A DNA stretch of 64,000 nucleotides. It comes from Basidiobolus meristosporus CBS 931.73 (Eukaryota; Fungi; Basidiobolomycota). The notes beneath the pieces were generated by a model that was given only the letters and a program-made list of their open reading frames with translations, was not told where the DNA came from and ran no database searches. Of this stretch, positions 21,351 through 58,849 are shown in pieces; position 1 is the stretch's first letter, and every line of letters starts with the position of its first letter. The stretch covers positions 91,647 to 155,646 of the forward strand of contig MCFE01000143.1 of assembly GCA_002104905.1 (NCBI GenBank). Reading direction: 5' to 3'. The translations under genes and the position numbers were made by a program.

Positions 21351-21412
21351 ATCAATTATTGATCTGTTAGCTTGTTCTGCTACTCCATTTTGCTGTGGGG
21401 AGTATGGTACGG

Positions 21413-22216
21413 TGTGGTAGGGTAAACATACCTCCCACAGACAAGTTTATTCATATAGTCATTATGATATACTTATCCATATTTTATCTTATTAGTATTA
21501 TCCCATTCTTCTTTTGCCCATATTATCAGTTTTATCCCCATATGATGTTTACCCTGATTAGTTATTAGCATTAGTTATCCCAGATGTTATTCAGCTTTGT
21601 GATCAGTAGATGTATCTATATAAGGCAAGTACCCGCGTCAGTACCTGTGACACATGTCCTAGGTCTGTGTTACCATCCCTACCATTTCAATACCATATAT
21701 GGTATTTCTATGTTGCACAGGTTTCAGACTACTGATTCCTGATTGGTTGAGAGTGCTGTGCCTTTTAGAACCTTCCAGGACATTCTTGGCATATTTTTAG
21801 CTCATGGTGATGTCATCAAGAATTCCACTGATACCTAGAATCTTCTAGAACCGTGTCATTAGTAATCACTTGGCAATCAGAAAAAGTATTTAAGGGAAAA
21901 CAATCCCTCATCAATAAATCATCCCTTCTATCAGTAACACTTCTGCCTTATTGATTAGCAGTTGATCACTGCACCTGCCTTCAACAGTACATCTAAGACC
22001 TGCCATCAAGGAGCTTTTCAGGGTAGTGCACAAGACACACAGAGGCCTTTGGAGACACTTGGAGCACCTAGGAAGCTAAAGAAGCAGGAGCTTTTACCAT
22101 AGTGACATATTGACAAAGACACCAGCAGTTTAGACACAGAGGTTATTGCACCCATCAGACACCTCACACACCTTGAGTTGTGTAGCTTCTCCCAGGAGTA
22201 CCTCTACACCACCACA
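21413..22216. mobile_element. Solo LTR (804 bp) of another family, inserted in the copia integrase
   Basis: Ends TGTGGT...ACCACA with a 4-bp TSD ACGG/ATGG (one CpG-type transition); splits the integrase motif ETTVPYSPQQNGVAE. Confidence 0.88.
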
Positions 22217-22507
22217 ATGGTAGTCTCTTGCTTTATCCCACGAATGTTGCAGAAGTGGATGAAGAGTTTTGAGGTATATTCTCCACCATTGTCAGAGCGT
22301 ATTTTCTTGATTTTTTCACCAGTTTCTCTCTCAACCATGGCTTTAAACTCCCTGAGCTTAGACAGAGCTTCTTCCTTTCTCTCCATGAAGTAGACCCATG
22401 TGTATCTTGTATAATCATCAATAAAAGTGACTAAATACTTCATCCCGCCAAAGGATAAATTTTGCATAGGTCCACACAGATCTGAGTGAATTAGATCTAA
22501 TTTTTTC
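22217..22507 (-). pseudogene. Copia integrase core fragment
   Basis: LDLIHSDLCGPMQ...FIDDYTRYTWVYF...RSDNGGEY. Out of frame with gag-PR by one base in the A-run near 22512. Confidence 0.9.
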
Positions 22508-23797
22508 TTAGTTTTTGATTAACCCAGAGCTCTTGAACAATTGTCTGGCTTGTTTCCCATATATGCAGGCTTCACAGTGCTCCAAATCAGCTGGGGGATC
22601 AACTTTCACTCCAGAAATTAGCGGATCTTTGATCATTTTATGCAAATAATCAAAATTGATGTGTCCAAATCTCCTGTGCCAAAGCATTGGTGTTTCTTCA
22701 TTTAAGTTACTTATATTGGCCTCCAAATATGATGGAATGTAAGTCAACTTGTATAGATTCTGATCTCTGATGCCCAAAGCAATATGGGCACCATTTTGAT
22801 CAGTGATCCTGCATCCAGAGTTGTCAAAACCAAAACTGAGTCCTTCTGCTGTGGCCTTGCTTACAGAGAGTAGGTTCTTGGCTATTTCTGGTACATAGAG
22901 TACTTCTTTGAAGGTCAGTGTATGGCTTCCTTCACTGCTTCTTAGGTTTACTTGGATAGTTCCTTCTCCCAATGCATCAAGTGTTCTGTTGTCACCCATG
23001 AAAACCTTCTTAATTGGAATTTCTTGATATTGGGTAAAAAGTTCTTTTTGGTGTGTAAAGTGTTGAGAAGCTCCAGAGTCAATATACCACGTCTGAGAAT
23101 CCTTGTTTGTGGTCATATTTAGTGCAGATATGAATAGTCTATCTTCAGTTGTTGCAGCATTTCCATATTCAGGCTTCTTTTGCTGATAATCTCTGTTTTT
23201 GAGACACCGGTCTGATGTGTGTCCTTTCCTTTTGGAGTAGTTGCAAAATAGGTTGCTGTTGCCTTTGTAGGGTCTTGGGTACCTCCTTTGTTGGTTATCA
23301 TTGCTTATTAAAGCATTTTCTTCTTCCTTCTTATTGGCGCTTGATTTTCTTAATTCTTCATCCAGGAGCCTTCCATATACGTAATTTAAGGTCAAATCTT
23401 CAGTTCTGGACTCTAGGGCTGATACAAGGCCCTGAAACCTGTCTGTCAGGCTATTCAGGATGGTAACTATCATATCCTCATCAGTAGTTAGTACACCCAC
23501 AGATTCCATCTCATCTACCAGCAGGGTAATTCTGTTAATTAGATTTTTCATTTCTTCTCCTGGCAGCATCTTTGTAGTAAAGAATTTTTGTCTCAGATAC
23601 ATTTTCTTGGCAGCTGAACATGACTGGTAGGTGTCTTCTAATGCCTTCCAGGCATTCTTTGCCGTTTTTGTTCTTGAGCATTGAATTAGCAATTTGTCCT
23701 TGACATTAAGGCAAATGCAGTTAAAGGCACTTTGTTCTTTCTTCTGGTACTTTAAGGCTTCCTCTCCCACATTTTTAGGAGGGCATTCTTCTCCCAT
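22508..23797 (-). CDS. Copia gag-protease-pre-integrase region (N-terminus frameshifted; true start near 23946)
   Basis: Gag segments, damaged knuckle CNYSKRKGHTSDRC, protease WYIDSGASQH, LWHRRFGH...CEACIYGK. Confidence 0.92.
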   Translation of the reverse strand: MGEECPPKNVGEEALKYQKKEQSAFNCICLNVKDKLLIQCSRTKTAKNAWKALEDTYQSCSAAKKMYLRQKFFTTKMLPGEEMKNLINRITLLVDEMESVGVLTTDEDMIVTILNSLTDRFQGLVSALESRTEDLTLNYVYGRLLDEELRKSSANKKEEENALISNDNQQRRYPRPYKGNSNLFCNYSKRKGHTSDRCLKNRDYQQKKPEYGNAATTEDRLFISALNMTTNKDSQTWYIDSGASQHFTHQKELFTQYQEIPIKKVFMGDNRTLDALGEGTIQVNLRSSEGSHTLTFKEVLYVPEIAKNLLSVSKATAEGLSFGFDNSGCRITDQNGAHIALGIRDQNLYKLTYIPSYLEANISNLNEETPMLWHRRFGHINFDYLHKMIKDPLISGVKVDPPADLEHCEACIYGKQARQLFKSSGLIKN

Positions 23798-26268: not shown

Positions 26269-27544
26269 ATGGAAACCTACACTGTCTCAGTAAAAGATAC
26301 TTGGCACGAGCATGATGGCGTGACTTTCTACACAAAACTCTTTGAGGTAGAATACATTAACTTAATTTCAAGGCTTCTTCTCATTCATCCGACCACTGTA
26401 GGTAACTCCTAAACCAAGAGCCACGGTGACACTCATTCACGGATTGGGAGAGCACTGTGACCGTTATGAGGAGCTTGGAAAATACTTAGGAGAAAGAGGA
26501 ATTCAAGTGTTTACATACGACCAACGTGGTTTTGGGAAAACCGGGTACCGTAACCCTCCCTTGGGCCATAGCGGTGGTTTCGAAAAGGTGCTACAGGATG
26601 TCGATTACTTTGTAGAGCGGTCGAGCTTTTCGGATCTGTCGGTCCCTCATTTTCTGGTATTGGCGAGTTAGATATGTAAGCATCCGACCCGATTGTAATA
26701 TTAGATCGTTTTGTAGTTTGGTCACTCGATGGGTGGTATGATTGTTTTAAATTACGGTGCCGTGTATAGCACACGCGAAATAGCCGGAATCATCGCATCA
26801 GGTGCAGTAGGGCAATTGATTAGTAAGTGAATGTTGGCTATAGCTGATACTTTGGCTACGTAGCACCCTGTATTCAAGCTGGGAAAGGTTATATCGTTTC
26901 TGGCATCCAAGCTAAAGCTCTCGGGTTCTTGGGATCGATCCCGATTATCAACACGCTTCCGATTCAATCCAACATCAGTTAAGGCCTATACCCAGTGCGT
27001 CATCACGTCCACCAGTACTAACCCGTCCAGTAGAGGCTGAACATCTCAGTTTTAATGAAAAATCCAATCAAGAGTATATGGGCAGCATGTATAACTTTGG
27101 CTACGCATCACTCAGTTGCCGTAAGTGGCCCATCACCTCATTTTATCACCCGCCATGTTAACTCGCGCTTCAGTTTCGGATATCTTTTATTACGGGAAAC
27201 TACTTCTCACTGATCGTTACAAAAACTTTTTGACTCCAGTGCTGCTGACACATGGTGAACAAGACCAGATCACCAGGTAAACAGAGTGTCATACTTTTAT
27301 ATCTTGCGATATACTAATCAATGCAATAGCTGTGCGGCAACAACAGAGTTTCATGACCTTCTGGAAGCAGACAAAACTCTCAAGATCTGGCCAAACTCAG
27401 CTCACGAACGTACGTAAACCCAAATGCTATCAATCATTCAGCCATTAATATAAGTTTGCAGTGCACTTCGAGGACAACAAACAGGAAGTAATGGAGTACT
27501 ATTACCAATGGCTGGACAACAAAATTCACCGGGAAGAAAAGTAG
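26269..27544 (+). CDS. Alpha/beta-hydrolase, monoacylglycerol lipase/lysophospholipase-like (Hydrolase_4), 8 exons
   Basis: Manual splicing at seven short GT-AG introns gives METYTVS...LIHGLGEHCDRY...YDQRGFG...FGHSMGG...HGEQDQIT...SAHELHFE...HREEK*. Ser-Asp-His triad motifs are intact. Confidence 0.9.
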
Positions 27545-27872
27545 GCCAGAAGCTCGAATTCTTATGTTCTGCATAGCCTAATTTGCATCTATTTTCCAGC
27601 TGGCCCAGCTTGGCTAAAGCATCCAATATTGACTGAGGTGCTCTTCCAGGATTCACTAAGGGTATCTAACTATAACGGACTATTAAACCGCAAATTCTGT
27701 CAATACTACAAGCTGTCTACGCCTTTCAAGGTCCCGATATTGATAAACAATTGGGCATCAATGATTAAATATATACGTATCCCCACATGGTTTTCAATTT
27801 GAGTGAAACTGGTTGTAGAGATAAAAGAATCATTGCCATGACCTTTATTCAGTATTGCATGCATTTTCACAT

Positions 27873-28136
27873 TTACCAATTATCCTCGTCATGGTGGCCC
27901 GATTCATCGCCAGGACCATCCTCATCCTGGTCGTCTCCGTAGTCACAGAATGGACCAGTGGCATCCTTTTCCCGGCAAACTGTCTGCTCTCCGCACATAG
28001 TCTCCACCCATTCATCGTTGACGCAGCGGATAATAGCTCGGTCATCCTCTGTGGAGCATTTACTTTCAAGGTTGTTGCAAGCCAGAACAATCTGACTCAA
28101 AAGAGCAAGCACAAGAATGGTTGCGTGGAACTTCAT
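27873..28136 (-). CDS. Secreted 6-Cys CBM19-like protein, copy 1 (87 aa, acidic tail)
   Basis: Signal peptide; C-x6-C-x10-C-x9-C-x5-C-x9-C with CVNDEWV; tail DYGDDQDEDGPGDESGHHDEDNW. Confidence 0.88.
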   Translation of the reverse strand: MKFHATILVLALLSQIVLACNNLESKCSTEDDRAIIRCVNDEWVETMCGEQTVCREKDATGPFCDYGDDQDEDGPGDESGHHDEDNW

Positions 28137-28489
28137 TAGATTATTGCCAGTGATGAAGAGTGCGTGATCTATTTATGTACAGCTTTGGAATCTGAGGTCC
28201 TTTCAATTCAGGAGCAGTCGCATGCTAATACTGCACAGCTTGCGTTGCCTTTGCAGAGGAAACCCCTTGGTCCCCCGTACTAAATAGTCAAATCGTTCTG
28301 GATAATTCAATACCCTGGGACCTCATGGATGAAAACTATTTAAGCAAAAAGCCTAATATAGAGTAATCTGCTAGAGACTTGTGGAAGTATAGGGCGAGGT
28401 TGGCTTATAAAAGTGGGGCATCTTCTATCGATGACACTCAACAAGTGCCAATTCCTCCACAGTATCGTCTCCGTTGAAAGATTACACCA

Positions 28490-28765
28490 ATGAAACTCTA
28501 CGCCACGCTGATATTCTTCGCTATTTTGAGTCAGGTTGCGCATGCCTGTCAAAGTATGGAAAGTAAGTGCTCCACTGAGGATGATCGTACAATCGTTCGC
28601 TGCGTCAATGATGAATGGGTCGAAACCAAATGTGGAGAGGGAACAGTCTGCCAAGAAAAGCGTCATACTGGGCCGTTCTGCGATTATGAAGGACATGATG
28701 ACTGGGAGGAGGATAATGATGGAGAAGATCATGGTGATGGTGATGATGAAGAGAGCGAAGATTAA
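28490..28765 (+). CDS. Secreted 6-Cys CBM19-like protein, copy 2 (91 aa, acidic tail)
   Basis: Same signal peptide and Cys pattern; D/E-rich tail; divergent from copy 1. Confidence 0.88.
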   Translation: MKLYATLIFFAILSQVAHACQSMESKCSTEDDRTIVRCVNDEWVETKCGEGTVCQEKRHTGPFCDYEGHDDWEEDNDGEDHGDGDDEESED

Positions 28766-29536
28766 AAAGATGCAAGACGTTCGAGTTGTATTTGGCTTAC
28801 AATAAACAGAAGATATTCTCTTGAACAATGTTTCTTTTCGCCAGATTTAAAGGATCTCGTGCCGAAAATATCCATCTTTTGTCATCTAAATTGTGACTAC
28901 TGTGACAGGTAATATCCCGAGTACTTGGATATTTGAAGATTGTATGTTACCACACGAGTGGTACTGAAGATTGTATATTACCATGCGAGTGGAGGTGCTT
29001 TCATCTTGGCCCACCTCCATCTCCTAATCACCCTGCCATCATGTAATACTAAGCTTTGTACATAAACCTGTAAGTTCAGCTTCAAAGGTGATAGTAGATA
29101 GGATTACTGCACATATTGCACTTCTGCATGGAAATGCTCCATTACTCTACCCGTCGCAGTTTCTGCTACTCCACAATTCTGCAGCTGCACATTTACAATT
29201 ATAGAAATTAAGTTGGTAACTCGTTATCACACCATTTGCCGTCATTCCAAGCTTTTGCAGTGGTGTCTTACTCCTTAATACCTAAATTTATCTCTCCATT
29301 TCACTCCAGTGCTAGGGGGTCTGTGATACTTCTCCGGATGGATGTAGGGGATTTGCAATGGTAAGGACTTTTAGAAGCGTATTGGTCATTGATACGCAGT
29401 TATGGGGAAAGGAGCACTATATTTAGAAACTATTAGTAACCACATAGAGATACCATTTACTACTATAAATACCTTGAAAGCTACTTCCCAAATGACATAC
29501 TCACAGCCTATCCTCTACTTCAACTACGATCATACC

Positions 29537-29806
29537 ATGAGAATCTGCACTGCATTTGTTGTTCTTGCCTTTCTGAGCCAGGTAGTGATGGGATGCACCC
29601 AAAACGAAAGCAAATGTTCCTCAGAGGATGCCCAGACTATCGTCCGATGCGTCAACGATGGCTGGGTTGATACGAAGTGCGGACAAGGAACAGTCTGTCG
29701 TCAAGGTGACCACACTGGGCCATTTTGTGATCACGAGGATGTGGAAGACGATCAAGAGTGGGGCCAAGATGATGATGAGGAGGAGGAGGAGGAGGACAAT
29801 GAATGA
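29537..29806 (+). CDS. Secreted 6-Cys CBM19-like protein, copy 3 (89 aa, poly-D/E tail)
   Basis: Start at the internal Met (MRICTAF) by homology with the other copies; TATAAATA upstream. Confidence 0.88.
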   Translation: MRICTAFVVLAFLSQVVMGCTQNESKCSSEDAQTIVRCVNDGWVDTKCGQGTVCRQGDHTGPFCDHEDVEDDQEWGQDDDEEEEEEDNE

Positions 29807-30453
29807 TACATCGTATAGTAATAATGATATTATATGTCTACCACTATCCAAATATCCTCTAAATAATAAAGCTCATCAGTAAGTGCAATCAATGCTATGA
29901 ATCTGTGATAATATCATACTATTGGCCATTCTCCTGATACTTCTCGTTGTCACATTAACTATCAGTCCTTGTCATTGTCCCCATCACCGCTTGATCAGAA
30001 GGTCTAGAGCAATTGGTGCAGCATAGACTCTCATGATTCGATTGTTTTATTCGAGGTATTAAAAGCGTTCAACGGCACCCTCGCCTAACCCTTTGCTGAT
30101 TTATATTCACCAAGTAAAAGCTAAGTTATAGCGCCAACGAAATTTACTCTATTCAGATGAACAACCATAATCCCATCTACTTTCTAGTGAACTATCGTAG
30201 CTTGCAAGTAACTACAAAAAGCTGTGACCATCAAGTATAAATCGTATTGGCATTTGTCCAGATTCGAAAACGTGATCTAATATGGCTATCAAGAATAGCA
30301 CAAGACAGACAAAGGCAAGGTATTGAGACGACAGCTCTTGTGAAATATTACTTTATTATTTAGTACAGCTAGTGTCGGCAGATCTATAAGCTAAAGCAGA
30401 GTTCTTGATACTTCTCTGCAACAATACTAATTTCATATACAGCACAGTCCGGA

Positions 30454-30750
30454 CTAGTGACCATGGTGGCGGTCATCCCAGTGCTCGTCGTGGTCTCCAT
30501 CCCAGTGACCGTCATGATCCCCATCCCAATGATCATCGTGATCCCAGCCATCATGGTCACAGAATGGTCCGGTGTGATCCTCCTCATGACAGACTGTCTC
30601 CTTGCCACACTTCGTCTCCACCCAGTCGTCGTTGACACAGCGGATAATGGTGCGGTCATCCTCGGACGAGCACCGGCTTTCATCGTGGGTGCATCCAATC
30701 ACCACCTGGCTGAGAAAGGCCAAAGCAATCAGTGCAACGTAGACTCTCAT
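30454..30750 (-). CDS. Secreted 6-Cys CBM19-like protein, copy 4 (98 aa, His/Asp/Trp tail)
   Basis: MRVYVAL start by homology; HWDGDHD(G/E) repeats. Confidence 0.9.
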   Translation of the reverse strand: MRVYVALIALAFLSQVVIGCTHDESRCSSEDDRTIIRCVNDDWVETKCGKETVCHEEDHTGPFCDHDGWDHDDHWDGDHDGHWDGDHDEHWDDRHHGH

Positions 30751-30900
30751 GATTTGGCTGTTGTATTCGAAATATGGAAAGTAAGGCACTGATGGGTATC
30801 ATTCAACGGCATCCTTGACTGATTTATATTCACCAGCTCACGCGATATGAGCTTCCGTTAAATTGTAGTGCCAATAGAACTCACTGAATACAAATGAATC

Positions 30901-30925
30901 GCATCGATCATCCTTACCCTGCTTT
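30901..30925 (-). promoter_or_regulatory. Conserved upstream element of copies 4-10 (example instance; also at 31911, 32897, 33906, 34861, 36138, 37191)
   Basis: Plus-strand GCATCGATC.(T)CCTT..CCTGCTTT lies 146-151 bp from the ATG in all seven genes, including promoters that otherwise diverge. CCAAT at about 120 bp and AATATAAAT at about 75 bp upstream in most copies. Confidence 0.6.
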
Positions 30926-31439
30926 GATAGCCTAGACTCCTTAATTTTGCCAACTGACTGCTACTGCACACGCACTCGCCAATTTCCCCCGCCTGATGGA
31001 TGTCTTGGAGAGACTCGAGTGGATAAAAGAGACCCTATGTCATTCGGCCTTGACGCATATTCCAGAAGCATACTGCATTTAGGTGATGTTGTGAAGACTG
31101 GTGTCATGTGACATAAAAAGTGGCTATCCGACTCGGGATTTCCTGGATAGCATCAGTCTACATTCCATTGAAGTTTATTTGATAAATGCCATACCTTCAG
31201 CTAAATATTATTGTGAAATATGCTTAGCACTTGGTATAACAACACGGCGTCATCAAGTATGTATCACAACCACAATCCTCATGATTCAAACATGCGATTG
31301 GATGTTACAGGACAGACGAAGGTAAGGTGAATAAAGACAACAAATGATGTAGGAAGTGATTTATTATTAAGTGCAATCAGCGACAGCAGGTCTTTAAACC
31401 AGTACAAAGCTCTTTATATCGTTCACAAAGTAATCCTGA

Positions 31440-31760
31440 CTAGTGATCACGGTGGCGGTCATCCCAGTGCTCGTCGCGGTCTCCATCCCAGTGACCGTCG
31501 TGATCCCCATCCCAGTGACCGTCATGATCCCCATCCCAATGATCATCGTGATCCCAGCCATCATGGTCGCAGAATGGCCCGGTGTGATCCTCCTCACGAC
31601 AGACTGTCTCCTTGCCACACTTCGTCTCCACCCAGTCGTCGTTGACACAGCGGATAATGGTGCGGTCATCCTCGGACGAGCACCGGCTTTCATTGTGAGT
31701 GCATCCAATCACCACCTGGCTGAGAAACGCCAAAGCAATCAGTGCAACGTAGACTCTCAT
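31440..31760 (-). CDS. Secreted 6-Cys CBM19-like protein, copy 5 (106 aa)
   Basis: Signal peptide, 6 Cys, four HW-containing tail repeats. Confidence 0.9.
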   Translation of the reverse strand: MRVYVALIALAFLSQVVIGCTHNESRCSSEDDRTIIRCVNDDWVETKCGKETVCREEDHTGPFCDHDGWDHDDHWDGDHDGHWDGDHDGHWDGDRDEHWDDRHRDH

Positions 31761-32452
31761 GGTTTGGCTGTTGTATTTGAAGTATGGAGAGTAAGATACT
31801 GATGGGTATCATTCAACGGTATCCTTGACTGATTTATATTCACCAGCTCACGCGATATGGGCTTCCGTTAAATTGTAGTGCCAATAGAACTCACTGAATA
31901 CAAATGAATCGCATCGATCATCCTTACCCTGCTTTAGTAGCCTAAACCCTGTAATTTTACTGACTAGCAGCTGCTACTACTACATACAAACACACAAATC
32001 CCCCGCATGGTGAATATCTTTGAGTGGCTCGAACAGATGAAGGAGACCTCATGTGGATCGACAACAGTGCGTATACCAACCCCATACAGTATTTAAGTGA
32101 TCTGGTGAAGGATGGTGTCAAGTGGCATCAAGTTATCTTGCATACCCCCATTATACATTCTCTTGAACTATCTGCTGATTTTCAATGTCGTGAATGCCAT
32201 TTTAGCAGTTACTACAAAAAGCTGTGGTGATCAAGCACGTACTGTAGCGGCAATTTCGAATTTCGAATATATGATCCTATATTGTTGTCGAGAATAGCTC
32301 AAACCAGGCAACGACAAATTACTGAGATAAGAACTATTATACGATATTATTTTATTATTAGGCATTATCTGTGTCATCAGGTCTAGAAGCCGACATAAGG
32401 TTCTCAATGTTTTTCTTCGACAATACCACTATCATAGACAACGCAATCTTGA

Positions 32453-32749
32453 CTAGTGATCATGGTGGCCGTCATCCCAGTGCTGGTCATCGTCTCCATC
32501 CCAGTGCTCATCGTGGTCCCCTTCCCAATGGTCATCGTGATCCCAGCCATCATGGTCGCAGAATGGCCCGGTGTGATCCTCCTCACGACAGACTGTCTCC
32601 TTGCCACACCTCGTCTCCACCCAGTCGTCGTTGACACAGCGGATAATGGTGCGGTCGTCGTCGGACGAGCACCGGCTTTCATCGTGGGTGCATCCAATCA
32701 CCACCTGAATCAGAAGGGCCAAAGCAGCCAGCACAACATAGACTCTCAT
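32453..32749 (-). CDS. Secreted 6-Cys CBM19-like protein, copy 6 (98 aa)
   Basis: Signal peptide, 6 Cys, His/Asp/Trp tail. Confidence 0.9.
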   Translation of the reverse strand: MRVYVVLAALALLIQVVIGCTHDESRCSSDDDRTIIRCVNDDWVETRCGKETVCREEDHTGPFCDHDGWDHDDHWEGDHDEHWDGDDDQHWDDGHHDH

Positions 32750-33458
32750 GATTCGATCGTTGTTTTGGCAATAACAAAAAAGCGGTGCTGATGGGTTTCA
32801 TTCAACGAAATTTTGGCTCTTATATCTACGGACTCATGCAATGCTAGCTTCCGCAAAGTTGTAGTGCCAACAGAATTCACTTTATTTAAACGAATAGCAT
32901 CATGCTTCTTTTCCCTGCTTTGATAGTTTAGACTCCTTATTTTTACAAAATGCCTAGCACTATCACTACTACACACACGCACGCACGCCCATAAATCCCC
33001 CCTGCTAGTAGAACGTCTGGAAGTGTATCGAACGGATATAAAAGACGCTGTGTTGATCGACACTAATGCATACTAATTTCACACTGCATTCGAGTGATGT
33101 TGCGAAAGATGGTGACATGAGACATAAGAGAGTAGTCACCTGACACGCGTTGTCTTAGATAGCCTCATACTACTATTGATTTTAATATGGTATGTTACTT
33201 TACTTTCTATGCATTCTAGCACAGTAAGGGTAGCAGCTACTAAAAACATATGACCATCAAGTACATCGTAGTGGTGATTGTTCACATTCGAATACGTGAT
33301 CTGATATAGCCATCCAAAATGACAAAGGACAAGTATTACAAGATTGCATGAAATTATTTATTGTTAAGTACTATCAGTATAAGCAGGCCTATAAATCAAC
33401 GCAGAGTTCCGAATACCTTTCTACAACAATGCTGGCATTATATGATAGGCAGCTCTAG

Positions 33459-33755
33459 CTAGTGATCGTGATGGCGGTCATTCCGGTGCTCGTCGTGGTC
33501 TCCATCCCAGTGACCGTCATGATCCCCATCCCAATGATCATCGTGATCCCAGCCATCATGGTCACAGAATGGCCCGGTGTGATCCTCCTCACGACAGACT
33601 GTCTCCTTGCCACACTTCGTCTCCACCCAGTCGTCGTTGACACAGCGGATAATGGTGCGGTCATCCTCGGACGAGCACCGGCTTTCATTGTGGGTGCATC
33701 CGATCACCACCTGGCTGAGAAAGGCCAAAGCAATCAGTGCAACGTAGACTCTCAT
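33459..33755 (-). CDS. Secreted 6-Cys CBM19-like protein, copy 7 (98 aa)
   Basis: MRVYVAL start by homology; 6 Cys; His/Asp/Trp tail. Confidence 0.9.
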   Translation of the reverse strand: MRVYVALIALAFLSQVVIGCTHNESRCSSEDDRTIIRCVNDDWVETKCGKETVCREEDHTGPFCDHDGWDHDDHWDGDHDGHWDGDHDEHRNDRHHDH

Positions 33756-34413
33756 GGTTTGGCTGTTGTATTTGAAGTATGGAGAGTAAGGCACTGATGG
33801 GTATCATTCAACGGCATCCTTGACTGATTTATATTCACCAGCTCACGCGATATGGGCTTCCGTTAAATTGTAGTGCCAATAGAACTCACTGAATACAAAT
33901 GAATCGCATCGATCATCCTTACCCTGCTTTAGTAGCCTAGATTCCCTAATTCTATTCACCGGTTACTACTGCTACTACTACTACTACTACACACACATGC
34001 AAGCGGCTCGAATGGATGACGGAGAATATCCGTTTATCGGCACCAGTGCATGCAGCAACCTCATACTGCATTTGTGTGGCGTTTTGAAGGATGGTGTCAA
34101 GTAGCATCAGCAAATGATCCTGAATAACCCCACTCTACTTTCTATTGAACTATCGTTGATTGCAAATAACTACAAAAGGCTGTGACCATCAAGTATAAAT
34201 CGTATTGGCATTTGTCCGGATTCGAATACGTGATCTTATATGGCTATCAAGAATAGCACAAGACAGGCAAAGGCAAGGTATTGAGAGACGAGAGCTCTCG
34301 TGTAATATTGCTTTATTAATAAGCGCAACCAGTGGTAGCCTATCTATAAATAAACACAGAACCCTCGTTGTTTTTCTTCGATAATACTAATTTCACAGAC
34401 AACACAGCCTTGA

Positions 34414-34710
34414 CTAGTGATCATGGTGACGATCATCCCAATCCTGGTCGCGATCTCCATCCCAGTGCTCATCGTGGTCCCCTTCCCAATGATCATCATG
34501 ATCCCAGCCATCATGGTCGCAGAATGGCCCGGTGTGATCCTCCTCACGACAGACTGTCTCCTTGCCACACTTCGTCTCCACCCAGTCGTCGTTGACACAG
34601 CGGATAATGGTGCGGTCATCCTCGGACGAGCACCGGCTTTCATTGTGGGTGCATCCGATCACCACTTGGCTCAGAAGGGCTAGAACAATTAGTGCGGCGT
34701 AGACTTTCAT
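34414..34710 (-). CDS. Secreted 6-Cys CBM19-like protein, copy 8 (98 aa)
   Basis: Mature sequence identical to copy 9; signal peptide identical to copy 10. Confidence 0.9.
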   Translation of the reverse strand: MKVYAALIVLALLSQVVIGCTHNESRCSSEDDRTIIRCVNDDWVETKCGKETVCREEDHTGPFCDHDGWDHDDHWEGDHDEHWDGDRDQDWDDRHHDH

Positions 34711-35695
34711 GGCTTGCCAGTTGTATTCGGAGAAACGTAATCGCTAGTTCGATGTGTACCAGCTTACGTGACCATTGTCCGATTTATATTCGCTCGCCCT
34801 TGCAACGTGATATCCCGTGAGCCCATGATACCAATGGGACTTGCTGTAGTTAAATGGTTTGCATCGATCGCCTTTTCCCTGCTTTAGTAGTGTGGGTTAC
34901 CTTCGTTTTCTAACCCTAACTCCATCCTTCTGCACGTACCCACTACCCCTAAATGATACATATCTCTGAGAGACTTGAATGGCTGTCAGGGACTACATGT
35001 TGATCGCACTAGTACCTACGCTCCACCCCCACATCAAACTAGGGCTGGGCTACGAATGATGGTGCCATCTGGGATAACAGACTGGCTGCCTCAGTAACGT
35101 TCACGTGGATAGCTATGTGATATTTTCTATTTCATTACTGACTGGGCATCTCATTTGAAATGTTGCAAATGTTATAGTTGTGGCAGCTAAATCCTTCACA
35201 GGCATTAGTAAAGTTTGTTGCACCCTTAGACAAGATTCATTTAAACGGTGCTTACAGTACCAGAATGTTTGTGATAACACTAGTATAGACGTTATGTGTA
35301 GCACAGGTTTTTTTGCACTCATCTTCCCAATGCTTACTATGGTTTCAATCTTAATGGCAATGAAGTGCATTTAGGGTTCCTAACTTCAACATATATTAAT
35401 ACAGTATGTTATTTTACTTTATATACATTCTAGCTCAGTAAGAATAGCAGCTACAATAAACATATATGACTTTCAAGCACATCATAGTGGTGATTGTCCA
35501 AATTCGAATACGTGATCTAATATAGCTATCAAGAATAGCACAAGACAGATAAAGGCAAGGTATTGAGAGACGACAGCTTTTGTGCGATATTGCTTTATTG
35601 CTAAATGCAACCAGTGTCGGCGTATCTATAAAGCGATACAGAATTCTGGCTGTTTTTCTTCGATAATACTAATTTCACAGACAACACAGCCTTGA

Positions 35696-35992
35696 CTAGT
35701 GATCATGGTGACGATCATCCCAATCCTGGTCGCGATCTCCATCCCAGTGCTCATCGTGGTCCCCTTCCCAATGATCATCATGATCCCAGCCATCATGGTC
35801 GCAGAATGGCCCGGTGTGATCCTCCTCACGACAGACTGTCTCCTTGCCACACTTCGTCTCCACCCAGTCGTCGTTGACACAGCGGATAATGGTGCGGTCA
35901 TCCTCGGACGAGCACCGGCTTTCATTGTGGGTGCATCCGATCACCACTTGGCTCAGAAGGGATAGAACAATTAATGCAGCGAAGACTCTCAT
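35696..35992 (-). CDS. Secreted 6-Cys CBM19-like protein, copy 9 (98 aa)
   Basis: MRVFAAL start by homology; 6 Cys; His/Asp/Trp tail. Confidence 0.9.
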   Translation of the reverse strand: MRVFAALIVLSLLSQVVIGCTHNESRCSSEDDRTIIRCVNDDWVETKCGKETVCREEDHTGPFCDHDGWDHDDHWEGDHDEHWDGDRDQDWDDRHHDH

Positions 35993-36752
35993 GGTTTGCC
36001 AGTTATATTCGGAGAGATAAAAGTCTTGATGATTAGCATTCAACAACACCAATTCTCAATTTATATTTCTTCAGCTTCTCAGTATAGAAGCACAAGAGTT
36101 TTTTGCGCCAATGGCACTTTGCGCTTGTAAATGAACCGCATTGATCATCCTTTTCCTGCTTTAGTTATTTGGATATACCTCTTTTACTTCAGAGTTTCTA
36201 TCACACGTTTGAATCCTCCCCCCCCCCAAAAAAAATAACGGCGATTATTGTGCAGCTCTGTTGAATGTAAGGGGTATGATGATCAGTACTAGTATATATA
36301 CATCCCACTCTAAAAGTGCAACACTATAAATGAGGGTCATATATTATTCAACCTACCGTTCATTAAGTAGATGTTTTCATGAGCAATTTCACTTAACATT
36401 TTTATCAAACTGCAGCTAGGAAGGTATGTTCATGTTTGAGTCGTAATATCTAAACTCACAATAGTGTTATTGAAGCGAACCATCCCTATAGTCTGCATTT
36501 GATTCAGTCAAAATTTTGAGTGTCAATATGGCTGTAGCAAACGTATTTCGCTGACTATTTACGATATTCAAACATATCAATTTATCTTGTAGTATAAACA
36601 CTGCGAAAGATATTTATGTAGAGTATTGAGTAACAACGGTGCAACATGTACCATTTTATTGAATGCGATCAGTTTCAATAGATTTATGAATCTACATAAA
36701 GCAATTGATGATTCTCTTAAATAAAGGGTTGACCATATACAGTCGAGATTGA

Positions 36753-37040
36753 TTAGTGGTCATCCTCCCAGTGCTCGTTGTGGTCTCCATCCCAGTGCTC
36801 ATCATGATCCCCTTCCCAATGATCATCATGATCCCAGCCATCATGGTCGCAGAATGGCCCGGTGTGATCCTCCTCACGACAGACTGTCTCCTTGCCACAC
36901 TTCGTCTCCACCCAGTCGTCGTTGACACAGCGGATAATGGTGCGGTCATCCTCGGACGAGCACCGGCTTTCATTGTGGGTGCATCCGATCACCACTTGGC
37001 TCAGAAGGGCTAGAACAATTAGTGCGGCGTAGACTTTCAT
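36753..37040 (-). CDS. Secreted 6-Cys CBM19-like protein, copy 10 (95 aa)
   Basis: Signal peptide, 6 Cys, His/Asp/Trp tail. Confidence 0.9.
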   Translation of the reverse strand: MKVYAALIVLALLSQVVIGCTHNESRCSSEDDRTIIRCVNDDWVETKCGKETVCREEDHTGPFCDHDGWDHDDHWEGDHDEHWDGDHNEHWEDDH

Positions 37041-37734
37041 GGCTTGCCAGTTGTATTCGGAGAAACGTAATCGCTAGTTCGATGCGTACCAGCTTACGTG
37101 ACCATTGTCCGATTTATATTCGCTCGCCCTTGCAACGTGATATCCCGTGAGCCCATGATACCAATGGGACTTGCTGTAGTTAAATGGTTTGCATCGATCG
37201 CCTTTTCCCTGCTTTAGTAGTGTGGGTTACCTTCGTTTTCTGACCCTAACTCCATCCTTCTGCACGTACCCACCACCCCTAAATGATGCATATCTCTGAG
37301 AGACTTGAATGGCTGTCAGGGACTATATGTTGATCGCACTAGTACCTACGCTCCACCCCCACATCAAACTAGGGCTGGGCTACGAATGATGGTGCCATCT
37401 GGGATAACAGACTGGCTGCCTCAGTAACGTTCACGTGGATAGCTATGTGATATTTTCTATTTCATTACTAATTGAGCATCTCGTTTGACGTGATGCCAAT
37501 GTTGGACTCGCACTAGCTAAGTATAGAGTTTAAACTATAAACAGGTGTAATGTAAACACAAGCAAGTAAGCATAAAGAAACTTCATATCTAAGTATGTCT
37601 TTTACCATTTGATGTCCAAAACGAGCTTTAAGAAGTGCATGCATTTATATGAATAGTCGCAGCAGGCCTATGAATCTATAGAGCTCTTAATAGATTGTGA
37701 TAGTGAAGACTGCATCATACATAGTACAGCTTTA

Positions 37735-37890
37735 TTAGTGCCCATCTTCACAATGCTTGACATGGTCCCCGCCGTCAGCATGGCCCTCACACCGATGCCG
37801 GTGATGGTCATCTCAGTGGCCAATGGTGCGCTCATCCTCGGAAGAGTACTAGCTTTCAATTGCGCATCCAACCATCACTTGGCCCAGTAA
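37735..37890 (-). pseudogene. Decayed copy 11 of the secreted-protein family
   Basis: The minus strand reads LGQVMVGCAIES*YSSEDERTIGH*DDHHRHRCEGHADGGDHVKHCEDGH*: two stops, deletion of most of the Cys domain, no ATG. Confidence 0.7.
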
Positions 37891-38656
37891 ATTCTTATTA
37901 CTCTGGTATACTTCTATTTTCAACTACCAAAGTCCCATCTTTACCTCATTGTGGGCCTACCAGCTATCAGTCAATTATAAATAATCGTCCCTTAGGATTT
38001 GACTATGATCAACCTCTGAATCTCTTGAAACACACATTTAGATATAGGTGGCTCGTTTCTATTCTGTCGGCTCCTATAGCACCATGAAGTACAAAAAGGT
38101 TGAACCCTCGAAGGTGATGCAACATATTTTGGTTGGCTCAAGTCTATATATCCGCATTGTTGGAGCATCAAATTGACAAGCATTCATTCCGACTTCTTTA
38201 CATGGTAGCTGTATGCTACATTTCCGTGTGATTTCAATCCTCATGGTATGCAACATACCCTCCTGTAATCCACCTCACAGCACACCTCTAGATATGCATT
38301 ATTGCTCCTGAATTCCAATTTCTCGCAGCACAAATGGTTAGTAAATCACCACTGGCCCCTACCTGGGCAAATAAGCTTGTGCTCTTTACTTTCGTTGCTC
38401 ACGTTCTCAGGGGATATAGATCAATTCGGAAATTGGCTGGATATTCGATTTTGCCTTAACGTACTAGCGGCAATCACACTCAAACCACAGTATTGTGCAT
38501 AGCAATGGTTTCTTCTTGTAGGTGCATAGGCAAAGATGTACATAAGTCGGCCCACTCTCTCAAGAATTCATTAAACAATCGATTTTCACCTCGACATCAA
38601 TATTGCACCCCCAAAAATCAAGCTAGACGGCATCTCTAACATATTCACAAGTCCAA

Positions 38657-38995
38657 ATGAAAGTAATTATATCTCTATTCGCCCTTGCCCTTTTGAGTCA
38701 TGCTGTGATCGGATGTAGCACTAATGAAAGCAGATGCTCCTCTGATGATGACCGCACTATTGTTCGCTGCGTTAATGATGAATGGGTAGAGACCAAATGT
38801 GGTGTGGAGACCGTTTGTCGCGAAGAAGAACACACCGGGCCATTCTGTGACCACGAGGACTGGGATCATGATGACCATTGGGATGGCGACCATGACGATC
38901 ATTGGGATGGTGACCATGACGATCATTGGGACGCCCATGACGGTGACCACCATGACGACAGACATGGGGATGATGATCACGATGATGATTATTGA
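38657..38995 (+). CDS. Secreted 6-Cys CBM19-like protein, copy 12 (112 aa)
   Basis: Signal peptide, 6 Cys, HWDGDHDD repeats. Confidence 0.9.
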   Translation: MKVIISLFALALLSHAVIGCSTNESRCSSDDDRTIVRCVNDEWVETKCGVETVCREEEHTGPFCDHEDWDHDDHWDGDHDDHWDGDHDDHWDAHDGDHHDDRHGDDDHDDDY

Positions 38996-39557
38996 GGTGG
39001 TCAATGATTTTCCTATTATTGGCGACAATTGCATTCTCATGAACATATCAGAATAAAGTTAATCATTCCGTTCCTCATCCATTTGCATTGGGACTAGCTG
39101 TTTTTACGAATTTATGATAGTATATGTTTATCTTTATTTATGATGGTTTATCAACAATACGAGTAATTCAACTATATGGCCAGCAATAATTAGCAACTAA
39201 TACAAGTGTACATGAGGTATGTCTTCTATAGCCAGATTTTGCCATGCAATCAATCAAACATACAGCAGGATGTAATGAGGCGATATGATTTCATTGGTCA
39301 AATATCATCGGTGTATGGACTGGCTTTTTGGGAAATGCCATATGCACTCCTATCTCCCAAACTCATGTACTATGGCAGCAATGTGAATGTGCATGATACA
39401 TCTTGGGCAAGTCTCTCAGTATACTATTTAAGGCCGTTGCTTTACTTCTACTCACTCACACTCAATCTTCATATTAGCATCTACTGCGCACACACAAACA
39501 GCATACACATCAAGCAAACTAGATACATCCTACCTACAAGCACTCAGGAAAACCATC

Positions 39558-39926
39558 ATGAGATTCTATGCCACTTTACTTGCTCTTGCTCTCTTGAGCC
39601 AAGCTGCGATCGGCTGTACCCACAATGAAAGCAAGTGCTCCGAGAAAGACGATCGCACTATTGTCCGTTGTGTCAACGATGACTGGGTAGAGACCAAGTG
39701 CGGTGTTGAAACTGTTTGCCGCGAAGAAGAGCACACCGGGCCATTCTGTGACCACGAGGACTGGGATCATGATGACCATTGGGATGGTGACCATGATGAT
39801 CATTGGGATGGCGACCACGACGATCATTGGGATGGCGACCACGACGACCACCATGATGACCACCATGACGGCCATGAAGACTGGGATCATGACGACGGGC
39901 ACTGGGATGAGCATGGTGATCATTAA
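39558..39926 (+). CDS. Secreted 6-Cys CBM19-like protein, copy 13 (122 aa, longest tail)
   Basis: 58-aa tail made only of D26, H17, W6, G6, E3; three exact HWDGDHDD repeats. Confidence 0.9.
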   Translation: MRFYATLLALALLSQAAIGCTHNESKCSEKDDRTIVRCVNDDWVETKCGVETVCREEEHTGPFCDHEDWDHDDHWDGDHDDHWDGDHDDHWDGDHDDHHDDHHDGHEDWDHDDGHWDEHGDH

Positions 39927-40600
39927 GCTAGTCTAAGAGATCAGAGTATCAGTTGCATCGCTATGCCTCAAGTAACATTCATATCAATAAACAAGTTATA
40001 CCTGACAATCTCATCTATCTGGAAAACTGAGAAAGTACTCAGCGCTAGATTGCAATATGCTAGAAGAATACCATATAATCAATAACCTTGGCACGTTCAT
40101 TGGGGAACGTTCTTTACAAGATATGTTCGCTTATATTCCATCCGTGATACGAGACAAATAGGTGTCTCTATACTCCAATAGGATATCACGTTTGCACCAT
40201 CAGAATATTCTGGTATACTGATCTTGATATTACACAGCGTATCCCGTTCACTTCATTCCATTCGCTAACCAACTTCAATAAGATTTGCTTATTCCGAAGA
40301 GCGAATTTCACCCCATGATTCATAGAGAAGGTACCCTCATCGAATGTCTCAACAGCAAGTTGGCTAAGAGCATATGCATCAACTGGACCGTTCGTAACAA
40401 GGAATGTCACACGAGGCCCAGGAGTGATTGTACTGATATCCATGATAACAACACAAGTGTAAGCGAGATGACACGAGCCAACTGGCCAGGTTAGCTTGAA
40501 ATTGAGGGATTTTATTTGACATGAGGGGGTTAAACAGTGAAGGATTATGGGATATTTATAAAATTAATTTCACTATTGCCGATGTTCAAACTTGGGTGAT

Positions 40601-42247
40601 TTAATTGAATTCCTTCTTCTCTTCAGAAAGCTCTCGGAGTTTAGCCTCTCTGTCCTCCTTGTAAGTATACTTGGTGGACAAGAAGATGAATACGAGATTG
40701 GCAGCAAGGCCGATACCGCAGTAGAGGAAGTACTTGGGAGGACCCTGCATAGAAGTTCCCACCAAAGCTTCTTCAATGGCAGTGACAACCAAGTTACCGA
40801 GGGAGACGGTGAGGAGCCAGAAGGATGAAGAGGTTGACTTCATTTGGCGACCGACCTGGGTATATGTGAATTGGAGACCGGTGGGGGAGACCATGGTCTC
40901 ACCAAGGGAGAGAAGGGCCCATTGGGGCAATTGCCAGGCTCCGTGCAGACAGTTAGGGCAGCTGGTGACCTTGCCACTCTTATCATGAGTACCATCAAAT
41001 TTGGATTGCACAATGTATTGGAGACCACCGGACAAAGCAAAGGAGAGGATCACAAGGAAGAAGCCAACAGCCATACGACGGAGGAGGTAGAACCGGATAC
41101 CACGTCTCTCGAGGAATGGGTAGAGAACCTTGGCGCAGAGGGGAACGAAGATCAGAATGAAGATGGTGTTGAAGATCGATGACTGTTCAGTAGAGATCTC
41201 GAGGGAGCCCCAGTTCTTGTTCATCATCTCATACTGCTCTTGCCATTCAGTACTTTGCTGATCGTAGATCATCCACCAGAACATGATTGGAAGAATCATG
41301 CCGAACACTTGACCAAACATGCGGATTTCCTCGACGAACAATGGGCCAACCAAGTCCTCGGCGAAGTTCAACCAGTTGCCACGGCGTTGGCGCTCCTCAG
41401 GGGTGGCCGAGGAGTACTTCTTGATGGCGTATACGGTACCCTTAAGCGCCTTCCAGGGAAGGAACTCGCCAATGGCTGGGACAATACGATAATGCTTGAA
41501 GCCCAAGATGAAGATCACCAATGCACATCCGAAAAGGCCAGCTGGAAGAATGAATGCACCAAAGTAACACTGTGAACCGAAGCAAGTAGCCTTATCCTTG
41601 ATCATTGGAGTGATGTATTGCGAGAGCAATGAGCCACTGTTGATGGAAATGTAGAACATGGCGAAGAACCAATCAAGGGCTTTGGTTTGATGAGGGAGAT
41701 ATTGATCACCACCGTGAGAAGAGACACATGGCTTGATACCACCGGTGCCGAGAGCAATCAGGGTCAAGGGAAGCATAGCAGTCCACAAGGGATAAGCGCC
41801 ATAGTTGCTGATCAATCCGTTGATTGAGAAGACAGCCAAAAGGATGGTACCAAGGAAGTAGACCACCGACAGGTAGACAATGGTGTGGTACTTGGCTAGC
41901 CAGGAGTCAGAGATGGCCGCACCGAGGAGGGGGAAGAAGTAACACATCATGTTGAAGGCGTGTGAATTCACCTTAGCCTGGACCGCATTAAGGCCCACGG
42001 CAGTCTTGAAGTATTGTTGAAGAAGATTTTTGATACCATAGAAAGTGAACCGTTCGCAGAACTCGTTGGGGATAATGTACCAAACAGCCTTAGGGATCTT
42101 ATTTGGATTCTCCAAAAGTTGTTGGTCAAGCTTTGCATTTAGCTCGCGTTCCAAACGTAAGAGTTCTTCTTCACGTTCAGTGAGTCTGTCGGTAGTACCC
42201 AGCTCCATTTGTTGGAGATTGTGATTGTCCTTCTCGTTTGCAGTCAT
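40601..42247 (-). CDS. POT/PTR proton-coupled oligopeptide transporter (SLC15/PepT-like), copy A, 548 aa
   Basis: ExxER motif NEFCERFTFYG, PTR signature LGTGGIKPCVSSHGGDQ, DQQSTEW, GETMVSPTGLQFTYTQ; many hydrophobic helices; intronless. Confidence 0.95.
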   Translation of the reverse strand: MTANEKDNHNLQQMELGTTDRLTEREEELLRLERELNAKLDQQLLENPNKIPKAVWYIIPNEFCERFTFYGIKNLLQQYFKTAVGLNAVQAKVNSHAFNMMCYFFPLLGAAISDSWLAKYHTIVYLSVVYFLGTILLAVFSINGLISNYGAYPLWTAMLPLTLIALGTGGIKPCVSSHGGDQYLPHQTKALDWFFAMFYISINSGSLLSQYITPMIKDKATCFGSQCYFGAFILPAGLFGCALVIFILGFKHYRIVPAIGEFLPWKALKGTVYAIKKYSSATPEERQRRGNWLNFAEDLVGPLFVEEIRMFGQVFGMILPIMFWWMIYDQQSTEWQEQYEMMNKNWGSLEISTEQSSIFNTIFILIFVPLCAKVLYPFLERRGIRFYLLRRMAVGFFLVILSFALSGGLQYIVQSKFDGTHDKSGKVTSCPNCLHGAWQLPQWALLSLGETMVSPTGLQFTYTQVGRQMKSTSSSFWLLTVSLGNLVVTAIEEALVGTSMQGPPKYFLYCGIGLAANLVFIFLSTKYTYKEDREAKLRELSEEKKEFN

Positions 42248-58600: not shown

Positions 58601-58849
58601 ACGGTTGTAGGCAACTGTCAATCAGTCAATCAATCAACAAGGTTAGTTTCTTCCCGTGGTCAAGTCACTCGTCACACAAACATGGACTGTACCTTCAGGC
58701 TCTTCGCCAAAGACCTTGATGTTGTACATGTGCTTGGTGTCGTAGCTGAGCACCTTTTCGATGAAGGAAACGGCGACCATACCGAGGCCAACCACCACAA
58801 TGGTTTGTTGAGCATCGGTAGGTGTAATTATTTCAGTATTCGGAGCCAT
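55691..58849 (-). CDS. niiA: NAD(P)H-dependent assimilatory nitrite reductase (fused NirB-NirD type), copy 1; exons 58849-58693 and 58614-55691, 1026 aa
   Basis: FAD motif VVVGLGMV; spliced GEEPEVAYNRVGLT; NAD(P)H motif IVGGGLLGLEAA; BFD-like CSCLNV/GTGCGGC and CAHF/GCEVC; siroheme/4Fe-4S CVGSTWC and GCIREC; C-terminal NirD/Rieske-like domain. 78-bp GT-AG intron at 58615-58692. Confidence 0.97.

Follow-up and report, generated by a model that had tools for sequence, protein, structure and literature searches.

A tandem array in Basidiobolus meristosporus encodes small proteins with a predicted signal peptide, a divergent CBM19-type module and an acidic tail predicted to be disordered

Results

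Composition of the array

The stretch of DNA analysed here, referred to below as the window, comprises 64,000 nucleotides of Basidiobolus meristosporus CBS 931.73 (contig MCFE01000143.1). At positions 27873-39926 it holds an array of genes for small proteins in which a predicted signal peptide is followed by a single cysteine-rich module, related to the CBM19 family of chitin-binding modules, and by a predicted disordered acidic tail; no catalytic domain is present. This architecture had been proposed in a first-pass annotation of the same DNA and was borne out by our analysis, and both in it and in the homology of the module to CBM19 we place high confidence. That the proteins are secreted and that they bind chitin and metal ions is inferred, as is the biological role proposed for them.

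A list of open reading frames (ORFs) covering 27000-41000, together with a tblastn search of one member against the whole window, returned 12 intact intronless ORFs of 87-122 amino acids, situated on both strands within 12 kb (E-values of 1e-34 to 1e-82 for the intact copies), and one decayed copy, in agreement with the first-pass count. A signal-peptide remnant at 29996-30034 (-) is an addition to that list. The features of the array are as follows.

27873-28136, (-) strand: copy 1, 87 amino acids; signal peptide, six-Cys module and Asp/Glu/Gly tail with 2 His and 1 Trp; an old paralogue whose synonymous sites are saturated relative to the other copies
28490-28765, (+) strand: copy 2, 91 amino acids; Asp/Glu tail; the best Pfam CBM_19 match of the array (E 0.037, 14.5 bits); TATAAA at -84
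29537-29806, (+) strand: copy 3, 89 amino acids when counted from the Met preceding the signal peptide; poly-Glu/Asp tail; TATAAA at -73
29996-30034, (-) strand: signal-peptide-only remnant of 13 codons, 69% identical to copy 5; E 4.2 taken alone, noted for its position inside the array
30454-30750, (-) strand: copy 4, 98 amino acids; the tail is a His/Asp/Trp octapeptide repeat
31440-31760, (-) strand: copy 5, 106 amino acids; four octapeptide repeats (24-nucleotide repeat, 4.0 copies, 31460-31555); the protein modelled with AlphaFold2
31833-31838, (-) strand: TATAAA box, 78 nucleotides upstream of the copy 5 ATG
32453-32749, (-) strand: copy 6, 98 amino acids
33459-33755, (-) strand: copy 7, 98 amino acids
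34414-34710, (-) strand: copy 8, 98 amino acids; its repeat unit matches that of copy 10 at 97% identity across 742 bp
35696-35992, (-) strand: copy 9, 98 amino acids; mature protein identical to that of copy 8
36753-37040, (-) strand: copy 10, 95 amino acids
37738-37887, (-) strand: decayed copy in which parts of the module, the tail and the end of the signal peptide can still be recognised, interrupted by in-frame stops and shortened by internal deletions (two stops in a 67-column tblastn alignment of 37% identity, E 0.003)
38657-38995, (+) strand: copy 11, 112 amino acids; long His/Asp/Trp tail with an Asp-rich end; public model P0002
39558-39926, (+) strand: copy 12, 122 amino acids; longest tail, 57 amino acids including 25 Asp, 17 His and 6 Trp; public model P0001

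ORFs running antisense to the tails and rich in Ile, Met and Val were rejected as artefacts, being the complement of GAT and CAT codons.

Nine of the 12 array proteins are absent as exact sequences from a collection of 15 billion proteins, the three present being P0001, P0002 and P0003. Evidently, the public annotation did not recognise these nine as genes. The public model of copy 3 (P0003, 134 amino acids, 29402-29806 (+)) starts 45 codons upstream of the signal-peptide Met and buries the signal peptide. A TATAAA hexamer lies inside this N-terminal extension and a further in-frame ATG is found 15 codons upstream of the signal peptide, so that the true start of copy 3 is uncertain.

Anatomy of the predicted proteins

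When the copies were aligned, the N-terminus was found to consist of M-[KR], a hydrophobic stretch and an end of the form L-S-Q-x-x-x-[GA]. A signal peptide with such an end, as originally described, is therefore general in the alignment, but two copies deviate, reading LIQ and LSH in place of LSQ. The Cys framework C-x6-C-x10-C-x9-C-x5-C-x9-C, spanning 45 amino acids, and the motif C-V-N-D-[DEG]-W-V are both invariant across the 12 copies, just as had been claimed, and further residues of the module besides Cys and Trp are invariant also. The calculated net charge of the module is -3 to -8, i.e. the module is acidic.

In none of the 12 copies does the C-terminus carry the hydrophobic stretch of a glycosylphosphatidylinositol (GPI) signal, confirming the earlier observation; all are rich in Asp, His or Glu, which rules out a GPI-anchored wall protein. 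A Kex2-processed repeat precursor, such as a ribosomally synthesised and post-translationally modified peptide of the ustiloxin/dikaritin type or a pheromone, was also rejected, as the tail repeats are not separated by K-R or R-R. The statement that dibasic sites are missing altogether is correct for 11 of the 12 copies; in copy 2, the sole K-R resides within the folded module.

The module is related to CBM19 in sequence and predicted fold

The Pfam CBM_19 family (PF03427) has a gathering cut-off of 20.1 bits, and no window protein reached it. Among full-length proteins the best scores were 14.5 bits for copy 2 and 12.3 bits for copy 11, while five others gave no match; among isolated modules, four of 13 gave CBM_19 matches, all of them below threshold (best E 0.038). 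The HMMER comparison that had been suggested for the assignment was thus negative, at 14.5 against 20.1 bits. CBM_19 was the only Pfam family to recur among the window proteins.

We searched a profile of the family against 1.84 billion protein representatives. P0005, a protein with four tandem modules, was retrieved at E 3.8e-12 and P0007, from Mortierella, at 1.4e-5. Both of these relatives exceed the Pfam CBM_19 cut-off, with 42.4 and 36.9 bits respectively. Alignment of the Basidiobolus module profile with their CBM19 repeats using hhalign gave a probability of 96.5% (E 7.8e-10). The N-[DG]-x-W-V hairpin and five of the six Cys (Cys2 to Cys6) fall in the same columns as in the P0005 and P0007 repeats, and Cys1 was aligned too in one of two alignments. 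The repeats of P0005 follow the pattern C-x6-C-x7-C-x9-C-x5-C-x9-C with W-V in the same register, the array modules being three residues longer between Cys2 and Cys3. Yeast CBM19 has been stated to contain eight Cys (bioRxiv 10.1101/2024.02.02.578540; a count not verified on sequence), as opposed to six in the array module. P0005 matches both CBM_19 (42 bits) and CBM_14 (29 bits) in Pfam; CBM_14 (PF01607) gave no match on any window protein even at E 10. CBM19 and CBM14 belong to one Pfam clan.

A model of copy 5 was generated by AlphaFold2 from a 29-row alignment. Residues 20 to 66 were predicted with a local distance difference test score (pLDDT) of about 90 and form five short strands. Comparison of this model with Swiss-Prot using Foldseek placed CBM19 modules of fungal chitinases among the top matches, the outcome anticipated by the first-pass annotation: ranks 1, 4 and 5 are Rhizopus oligosporus Chi1/Chi2 (residues 361-408) and yeast Cts1 (residues 507-554). 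The CBM19 matches superimpose with a root-mean-square deviation (rmsd) of 1.6-2.4 Å over 48-50 residues at 27-29% identity, Rhizopus chitinases 1 and 2 having an rmsd of 1.6 Å. The Foldseek E-values are weak (0.002-0.15) and the scores modest because the domain has only 47 residues; many CBM14 modules come after the CBM19 ones. Of the 25 top cluster matches in the AlphaFold database, 11 are named CBM19.

Structural matches in the PDB are likewise chitin binders, namely the CBM14 of CHIT1, Avr4, Der p 23, Blo t 12 and tachycitin (Z 3.4-5.6). With VIA-align, Z was 5.6 for CHIT1, 4.6 for Der p 23, 4.1 for Avr4 and 3.4 for tachycitin, values that, being below 8, are not decisive for a CBM14 fold; the Avr4 structures matched were 6bn0 and 4z4a (Z 3.7-4.1). 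Sequence searches of the PDB with the full protein, the tail and the module profile returned no matches, and hence no solved structure of a CBM19 module, and in the ESM Atlas all scores for the whole protein and the tail were <0.75, below the level of a lead.

Judged by profile alignment and predicted fold, then, the array protein contains a divergent CBM19-type module, homologous to the family in both respects without membership at the Pfam threshold. The original CBM19-like assignment can be retained for homology (family profile, hhalign) and for fold (Rhizopus Chi1/Chi2, yeast Cts1), but not at the Pfam cut-off. The module probably binds chitin (or chitosan).

The tail is repetitive, acidic and, in nine copies, rich in His

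In the AlphaFold2 model the tail has a pLDDT of 48-57 and no secondary structure, and it is accordingly predicted to be disordered. Tandem Repeats Finder detected a 24-nucleotide repeat, present in 2.2-4.0 units, in copies 4 to 12. This repeat encodes the octapeptide H-W-D-G-D-H-D-[DGE], with Trp recurring every eight residues. The nine His-rich tails have a His fraction of 0.24-0.30, an Asp+Glu fraction of 0.39-0.51 and a Trp fraction of 0.09-0.13, while copies 1 to 3 possess Asp/Glu-rich tails with one or two His each. Lys and Arg are nearly absent from the tails. The description of the tail as imidazole-rich consequently applies to nine of the twelve copies and fails for copies 1 to 3, in which there is almost no His. 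The calculated charge of the tail is -11 to -28 at pH 7.5, -3 to -14 at pH 5.5 and +8 to +16 at pH 3.

Module and tail are under purifying selection

Over the first 27 tail codons, copies 11 and 12 differ by no nonsynonymous changes at 72 sites and by five synonymous changes at 9 sites. For the tails of copies 5 and 12, the proportion of nonsynonymous differences (pN) is 0.06 and that of synonymous differences (pS) about 1.0. The tail sequence is under purifying selection and not drifting. Between the modules of B. meristosporus and Basidiobolus ranarum, nonsynonymous divergence (dN) is approximately 0.12 and synonymous divergence (dS) is saturated. Copies 1, 2, 3, 11 and 12 are old, and DNA similarity between old copies ends at the borders of the coding sequence, which is the signature of selection on coding sequence. 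Purifying selection acts on module and tail alike.

Copies 4 to 10, by comparison, are recent duplicates (dS 0-0.12). Self-comparison of the locus revealed that they share units of 450-2585 bp at 74-97% identity, including a duplicated two-gene unit. In a tree built from signal-peptide and module DNA, 8 of 17 inner branches have less than 80% support, which is too little resolution for the ancestral tail type to be read from it. The tree suggests a mostly species-specific expansion, with copies 1 and 2 placed near B. ranarum genes, although it is poorly resolved.

The right end of the array occurs in a second version on another contig of the same assembly (L002; MCFE01001087.1, 442-4731). Its genes comprise one resembling copy 10, one identical to copy 11 and two resembling copy 12 (127 and 114 amino acids against 122), followed by the same PTR2 genes. 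This version holds one extra copy-12-like gene, and the tails are 49, 62 and 33 residues long. Near-identical proteins encoded on this second contig carry the B. meristosporus CBS 931.73 names K493DRAFT_309321 and K493DRAFT_309322. The second contig is an alternative haplotype or a segmental duplicate. As the two versions of the right end differ, the number of genes and the number of octapeptide repeats both vary within one genome.

Distribution of the family

The exhaustive profile search of the 1.84 billion representatives returned only Basidiobolus proteins at E <1e-30 and, beyond these, a handful of proteins from other early-diverging fungi. Word-indexed protein searches with two alignments returned Basidiobolus proteins only. 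The same architecture was not found in any other genus in the libraries searched.

B. ranarum possesses an array of its own: a contig of 13 kb (L001) carries at least seven paralogues, all on one strand. The tails of these paralogues retain the composition (His 0.21-0.25, Asp+Glu 0.50-0.55, Trp 0.06-0.09) while differing in sequence, an opening W-D-H-D segment being shared. Acidic-tailed single-module relatives, P0009 and P0010, are also encoded in B. ranarum. Two irregular copies were seen on the 13-kb contig, one with a disrupted signal-peptide region at 8717-9208 (+) and the other, at about 3412-3780, visible only through an antisense ORF; both are possibly pseudogenes or mis-assemblies.

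Matches in the Harpellales genera Zancudomyces, Furculomyces and Smittium (P0008, P0011 and P0016; E 6e-5 to 3e-4) are named 'CBM19 domain-containing' in UniProt. P0012, an ENA protein with a His/Asn-rich tail, was rejected as an independent relative: its E-value is 7.8e-4, it lacks Trp, it has no Pfam match and its N-terminus resembles that of a bacterial lipoprotein.

The first-pass annotation had recognised no described fungal family with this architecture, and our search agrees with it: neither the family nor any fusion of a CBM19 module to an Asp/His/Trp tail was described in the full-text literature searched.

Promoters and sequencing runs

TATAAA is located at -73 to -84 from the start codon in 8 of the 12 copies, against a background of 0.22 hexamers per 200 nucleotides on one strand, and several B. 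ranarum copies have TATAAA in a similar upstream region. TATA boxes were the only upstream motif shared among diverged copies of the two species; no metal- or pH-response element was detected there. Sequencing runs holding the locus cover intergenic DNA at even depth and are therefore genomic; RNA runs were listed neither for the locus nor for the one gene looked up. Runs under the same species label, from another sample, contain pieces of the module at 90-95% identity. The case that the genes are functional draws on selection and on promoter-like signals in the DNA.

Surroundings of the array

A copia-type long terminal repeat retroelement with gag, pre-integrase and RVT_2 regions is situated at 19167-23797 (-), approximately 4 kb upstream of the array. 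Further to the left are a second Pol fragment and a fragment of a tnp2-family transposase (6281-6943 (-) and 2162-2860 (+)). Just upstream of copy 1, at 26426-26671 (+), is an ORF fragment resembling an alpha/beta-hydrolase, with a motif judged by eye to be monoglyceride-lipase-like; it is probably one exon of a spliced gene.

On the other side, the array is adjoined by four paralogous genes for PTR2/POT peptide transporters, at 40601-42247 (-), 46383-48032 (+), 49439-51151 (+) and 53468-55181 (+), and this PTR2 neighbourhood is kept on the second contig. Beyond them, tandem ORFs at 55691-58621 (-) and 59914-62838 (-), of 976 and 974 amino acids, each contain every domain of an NAD(P)H nitrite reductase (Pyr_redox_2, Fer2_BFD, NIR_SIR, Rieske_2) with near-equal Pfam scores. 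They sit in 2-kb blocks with a G+C content of 0.535, compared with about 0.42 elsewhere in the window, and may represent a recent duplication; given this composition, a foreign origin is conceivable. The region is rich in tandem duplicates, and nothing in the flanks within the window indicated the function of the array.

Discussion

A proposed function for the array proteins

Our overall proposal is that the array represents a Basidiobolus-specific tandem family of small secreted proteins made up of a cleavable signal peptide, a divergent three-disulfide homologue of CBM19 and a disordered tail, in which the module would dock on chitin and the tail would be a pH-switching chelator of metals. 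Taken in its entirety, we give this statement slightly less than an even chance of being correct. Docking would occur via the conserved C-x-N-[DG]-x-W-V hairpin, and the chitin might be that of the fungus's own wall or insect chitin in gut and faeces. From the module, the tail would project as a multivalent carboxylate/imidazole chelator of divalent metal ions, offering roughly one site of the His2/Asp2 type per octapeptide. At neutral pH the tail would carry a strongly negative net charge, which would turn positive at the pH of the stomach.

Considering the coordination chemistry of Asp and His, the nine His-rich tails very likely bind Zn, Cu, Ni and ions of similar kind in vitro. A physiological role of the array proteins in metal handling is far less assured, and we think it somewhat less likely than not. 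One form such a role could take is a chitin-anchored metallophore layer, in which the modules fasten the His/Asp/Trp octapeptide chelators to the wall of hyphae or spores, or else to insect chitin that has been ingested, and Zn, Cu or Ni is loaded at neutral pH and released as His and Asp become protonated; we regard this form as possible but doubtful. Basidiobolus has expanded siderophore synthetases and measured siderophore activity (PMC7466969), and it passes through the guts of vertebrates, namely insect-eating amphibians and reptiles (PMC9391592, PMC7466969). The genus is also among the fungi with the most chitinases, and insect- and fungus-derived nutrition has been described (PMC8042737).

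Several observations weigh against the chitin-docking, metal-chelating proposal. Neither the full-length proteins nor the isolated modules reach the Pfam CBM_19 cut-off, and a module with a net charge of -3 to -8 is being proposed to bind neutral chitin. Three copies are almost devoid of His, and imidazole metal chelation is for this reason not a function common to all copies; acidic-tailed single-module relatives (P0009, P0010) are found in B. ranarum as well. The Trp of the tail is conserved, for which metal binding offers no explanation. Finally, the upstream regions yielded no metal motif.

Alternative explanations

The strongest alternative, which we nevertheless think unlikely, is that the proteins coat the chitin of the fungus's own wall and shield it from chitinases of insect-eating hosts in the amphibian or reptile stomach and gut. 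The tail would then be a steric or electrostatic brush and any metal binding incidental. The predicted design is that of Avr4, which is among the PDB matches: a small secreted protein that lacks an enzyme domain and carries a single chitin-binding module, from the same fold superfamily. A high copy number would suit a coating protein required in stoichiometric amounts, and passage through vertebrate guts would supply the occasion (PMC9391592, PMC7466969). However, Avr4 has no such tail, and the His/Asp/Trp repeat is conserved at the amino acid level to a degree that exceeds the needs of a generic brush.

The same reversal of charge that enters the metal-chelating proposal could instead serve a wall polyampholyte or cross-linker, and this we consider distinctly improbable. 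Here the module would sit on acetylated chitin and the polyanionic tail on cationic chitosan or other wall polymers, with protonation of His switching the binding and so adjusting the charge, hydration or adhesion of the wall as the fungus moves from the stomach through the intestine into the faeces. The calculated charge of the nine His-rich tails does reverse its sign between pH 7.5 and pH 3. Moreover, the Asp/Glu-only tails of copies 1 to 3, together with P0009 and P0010, suggest that acidity and not His is the common denominator, and Zoopagomycota walls are reported as chitin-rich in an excerpt of PMC11170279. The idea rests entirely on composition, though, and it leaves the conserved spacing of Trp unexplained.

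Slightly more improbable again is a binder of foreign chitin that targets insect cuticle remains or competing fungi, acting as a chitinase helper, an adhesin or a tachycitin-like antimicrobial. The large chitinase repertoire and the insect- and fungus-derived nutrition of the genus (PMC8042737) would fit such a role, tachycitin and Der p 23 have the same fold, and the relatives P0008 and P0011 from insect-gut Harpellales are multi-module proteins with hydrophobic C-termini, as would be expected of surface proteins. Conversely, known antimicrobial chitin binders are cationic whereas the array proteins are strongly anionic at neutral pH, and the locus offers no enzyme partner, its flanks being PTR2 transporters and a retroelement.

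Nucleation of Ca mineral, one of the roles originally suggested, found no specific support. A calcium-binding or mineral-nucleating wall protein resembling CAP-1 or Pif is the weakest of the shielding, polyampholyte, foreign-chitin and mineral readings, and we judge it highly improbable. The Asp content of the tails is very high, and the full string DxDxDG does occur, 0-2 times per tail, in copies 1, 4, 5 and 7. Pif is also a weak Foldseek match (probability 0.54-0.57), by way of its chitin-binding module and an acidic stretch. However, the nine His-rich tails together contain 24 DxDxD strings, shuffled tails contain 18.4 ± 4.2, and a count of 24 is attained in 234 of 2000 shuffles, so that there is no enrichment. 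The reading of these strings as EF-hand-like or thrombospondin-type calcium loops was dropped on this ground. In addition, His and Trp are atypical ligands of Ca, and no report of a Basidiobolus biomineral was found in the literature.

That the array is non-functional or unexpressed repeat DNA, its ORFs persisting by chance or through recent duplication, is scarcely credible: the absence of nine proteins from the 15-billion-protein collection, the recency of seven copies (dS 0-0.12) and the want of a listed RNA run are outweighed by five old lineages with intact ORFs, saturated dS, low dN and similarity confined to coding sequence, by a tail with no nonsynonymous against five synonymous changes, and by a parallel array in B. 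ranarum, with a truly decayed copy standing alongside as a contrast.

Significance

Should the proposed metallophore layer exist, it would constitute a wall-bound, pH-gated store or shield of metals for an early-diverging fungus that passes through guts, and the rapid gain and loss of genes and of 24-nucleotide repeats would tune its capacity. More broadly, metal binding by the tail, or a pH-dependent switch of the tail on chitin, would connect the biology of the wall with the handling of metals while the fungus, which is an opportunistic pathogen as well, passes through the gut, and the array would provide a compact natural chitin-targeted chelating tag. If the tail does neither, the array is another lineage-specific family of small secreted proteins, expansions of which are common in fungi.

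In either case the family comprises at least a dozen genes, most of which the public annotation lacks, and the numbers of copies and repeats appear to vary between haplotypes. Stand-alone chitin-binding modules, including Avr4, the LysM effectors and the CBM18 expansion of the frog chytrid, are central to how fungi hide and remodel their walls. To our knowledge, almost none have been characterised in the Zoopagomycota.

Comparison with known systems

The secreted fungal zincophores Pra1 of Candida albicans and Aspf2 capture Zn in the host through His-rich regions. Their likeness to the array proteins is one of functional analogy only: they have an unrelated fold, contain no chitin-binding module and are encoded by single-copy, transporter-paired genes, and the Pfam scan of the window proteins gave only weak CBM_19 matches and no homology to Pra1 or Aspf2.

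The two-part logic of a chitin anchor and a charged low-complexity region is shared with oyster Pif, crayfish CAP-1 and the squid beak proteins. These belong to unrelated lineages, have other compositions and function in hard tissues, whereas neither a mineral nor a hardened tissue is known in the present case, and the calcium motifs are not enriched in the array tails.

Avr4 of Cladosporium fulvum, tachycitin, Der p 23 and the peritrophins resemble the array proteins as predicted here: they are small, secreted and free of enzyme domains, and each has a single chitin-binding module belonging to the same fold superfamily. Avr4 shields fungal wall chitin from the chitinases of plants. In contrast to the array proteins, however, this group has CBM14 modules, no low-complexity tail and no such tandem arrays, and its members come from plant pathogens or animals. 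The multi-CBM19 surface proteins of Harpellales are similarly non-enzymatic and belong to gut-associated early-diverging fungi, but they have four to six modules in 500-600 amino acids, a hydrophobic C-terminus and no Asp/His/Trp tail.

The best structural match remains the CBM19 of fungal GH18 chitinases (Cts1, Rhizopus Chi1/Chi2), and the array module has its six-Cys framework and C-x-N-[DG]-x-W-V hairpin in common with the repeats that pass the Pfam cut-off. Unlike the CBM19 of chitinases, the array proteins stand alone, score below that cut-off and have a longer Cys2-Cys3 loop, an acidic module and an Asp/His/Trp tail. While CBM19 modules and stand-alone chitin-binding effectors are each well known, the combination of a CBM19-type anchor with a repeat-built Asp/His/Trp tail under selection is unusual and appears to be new.

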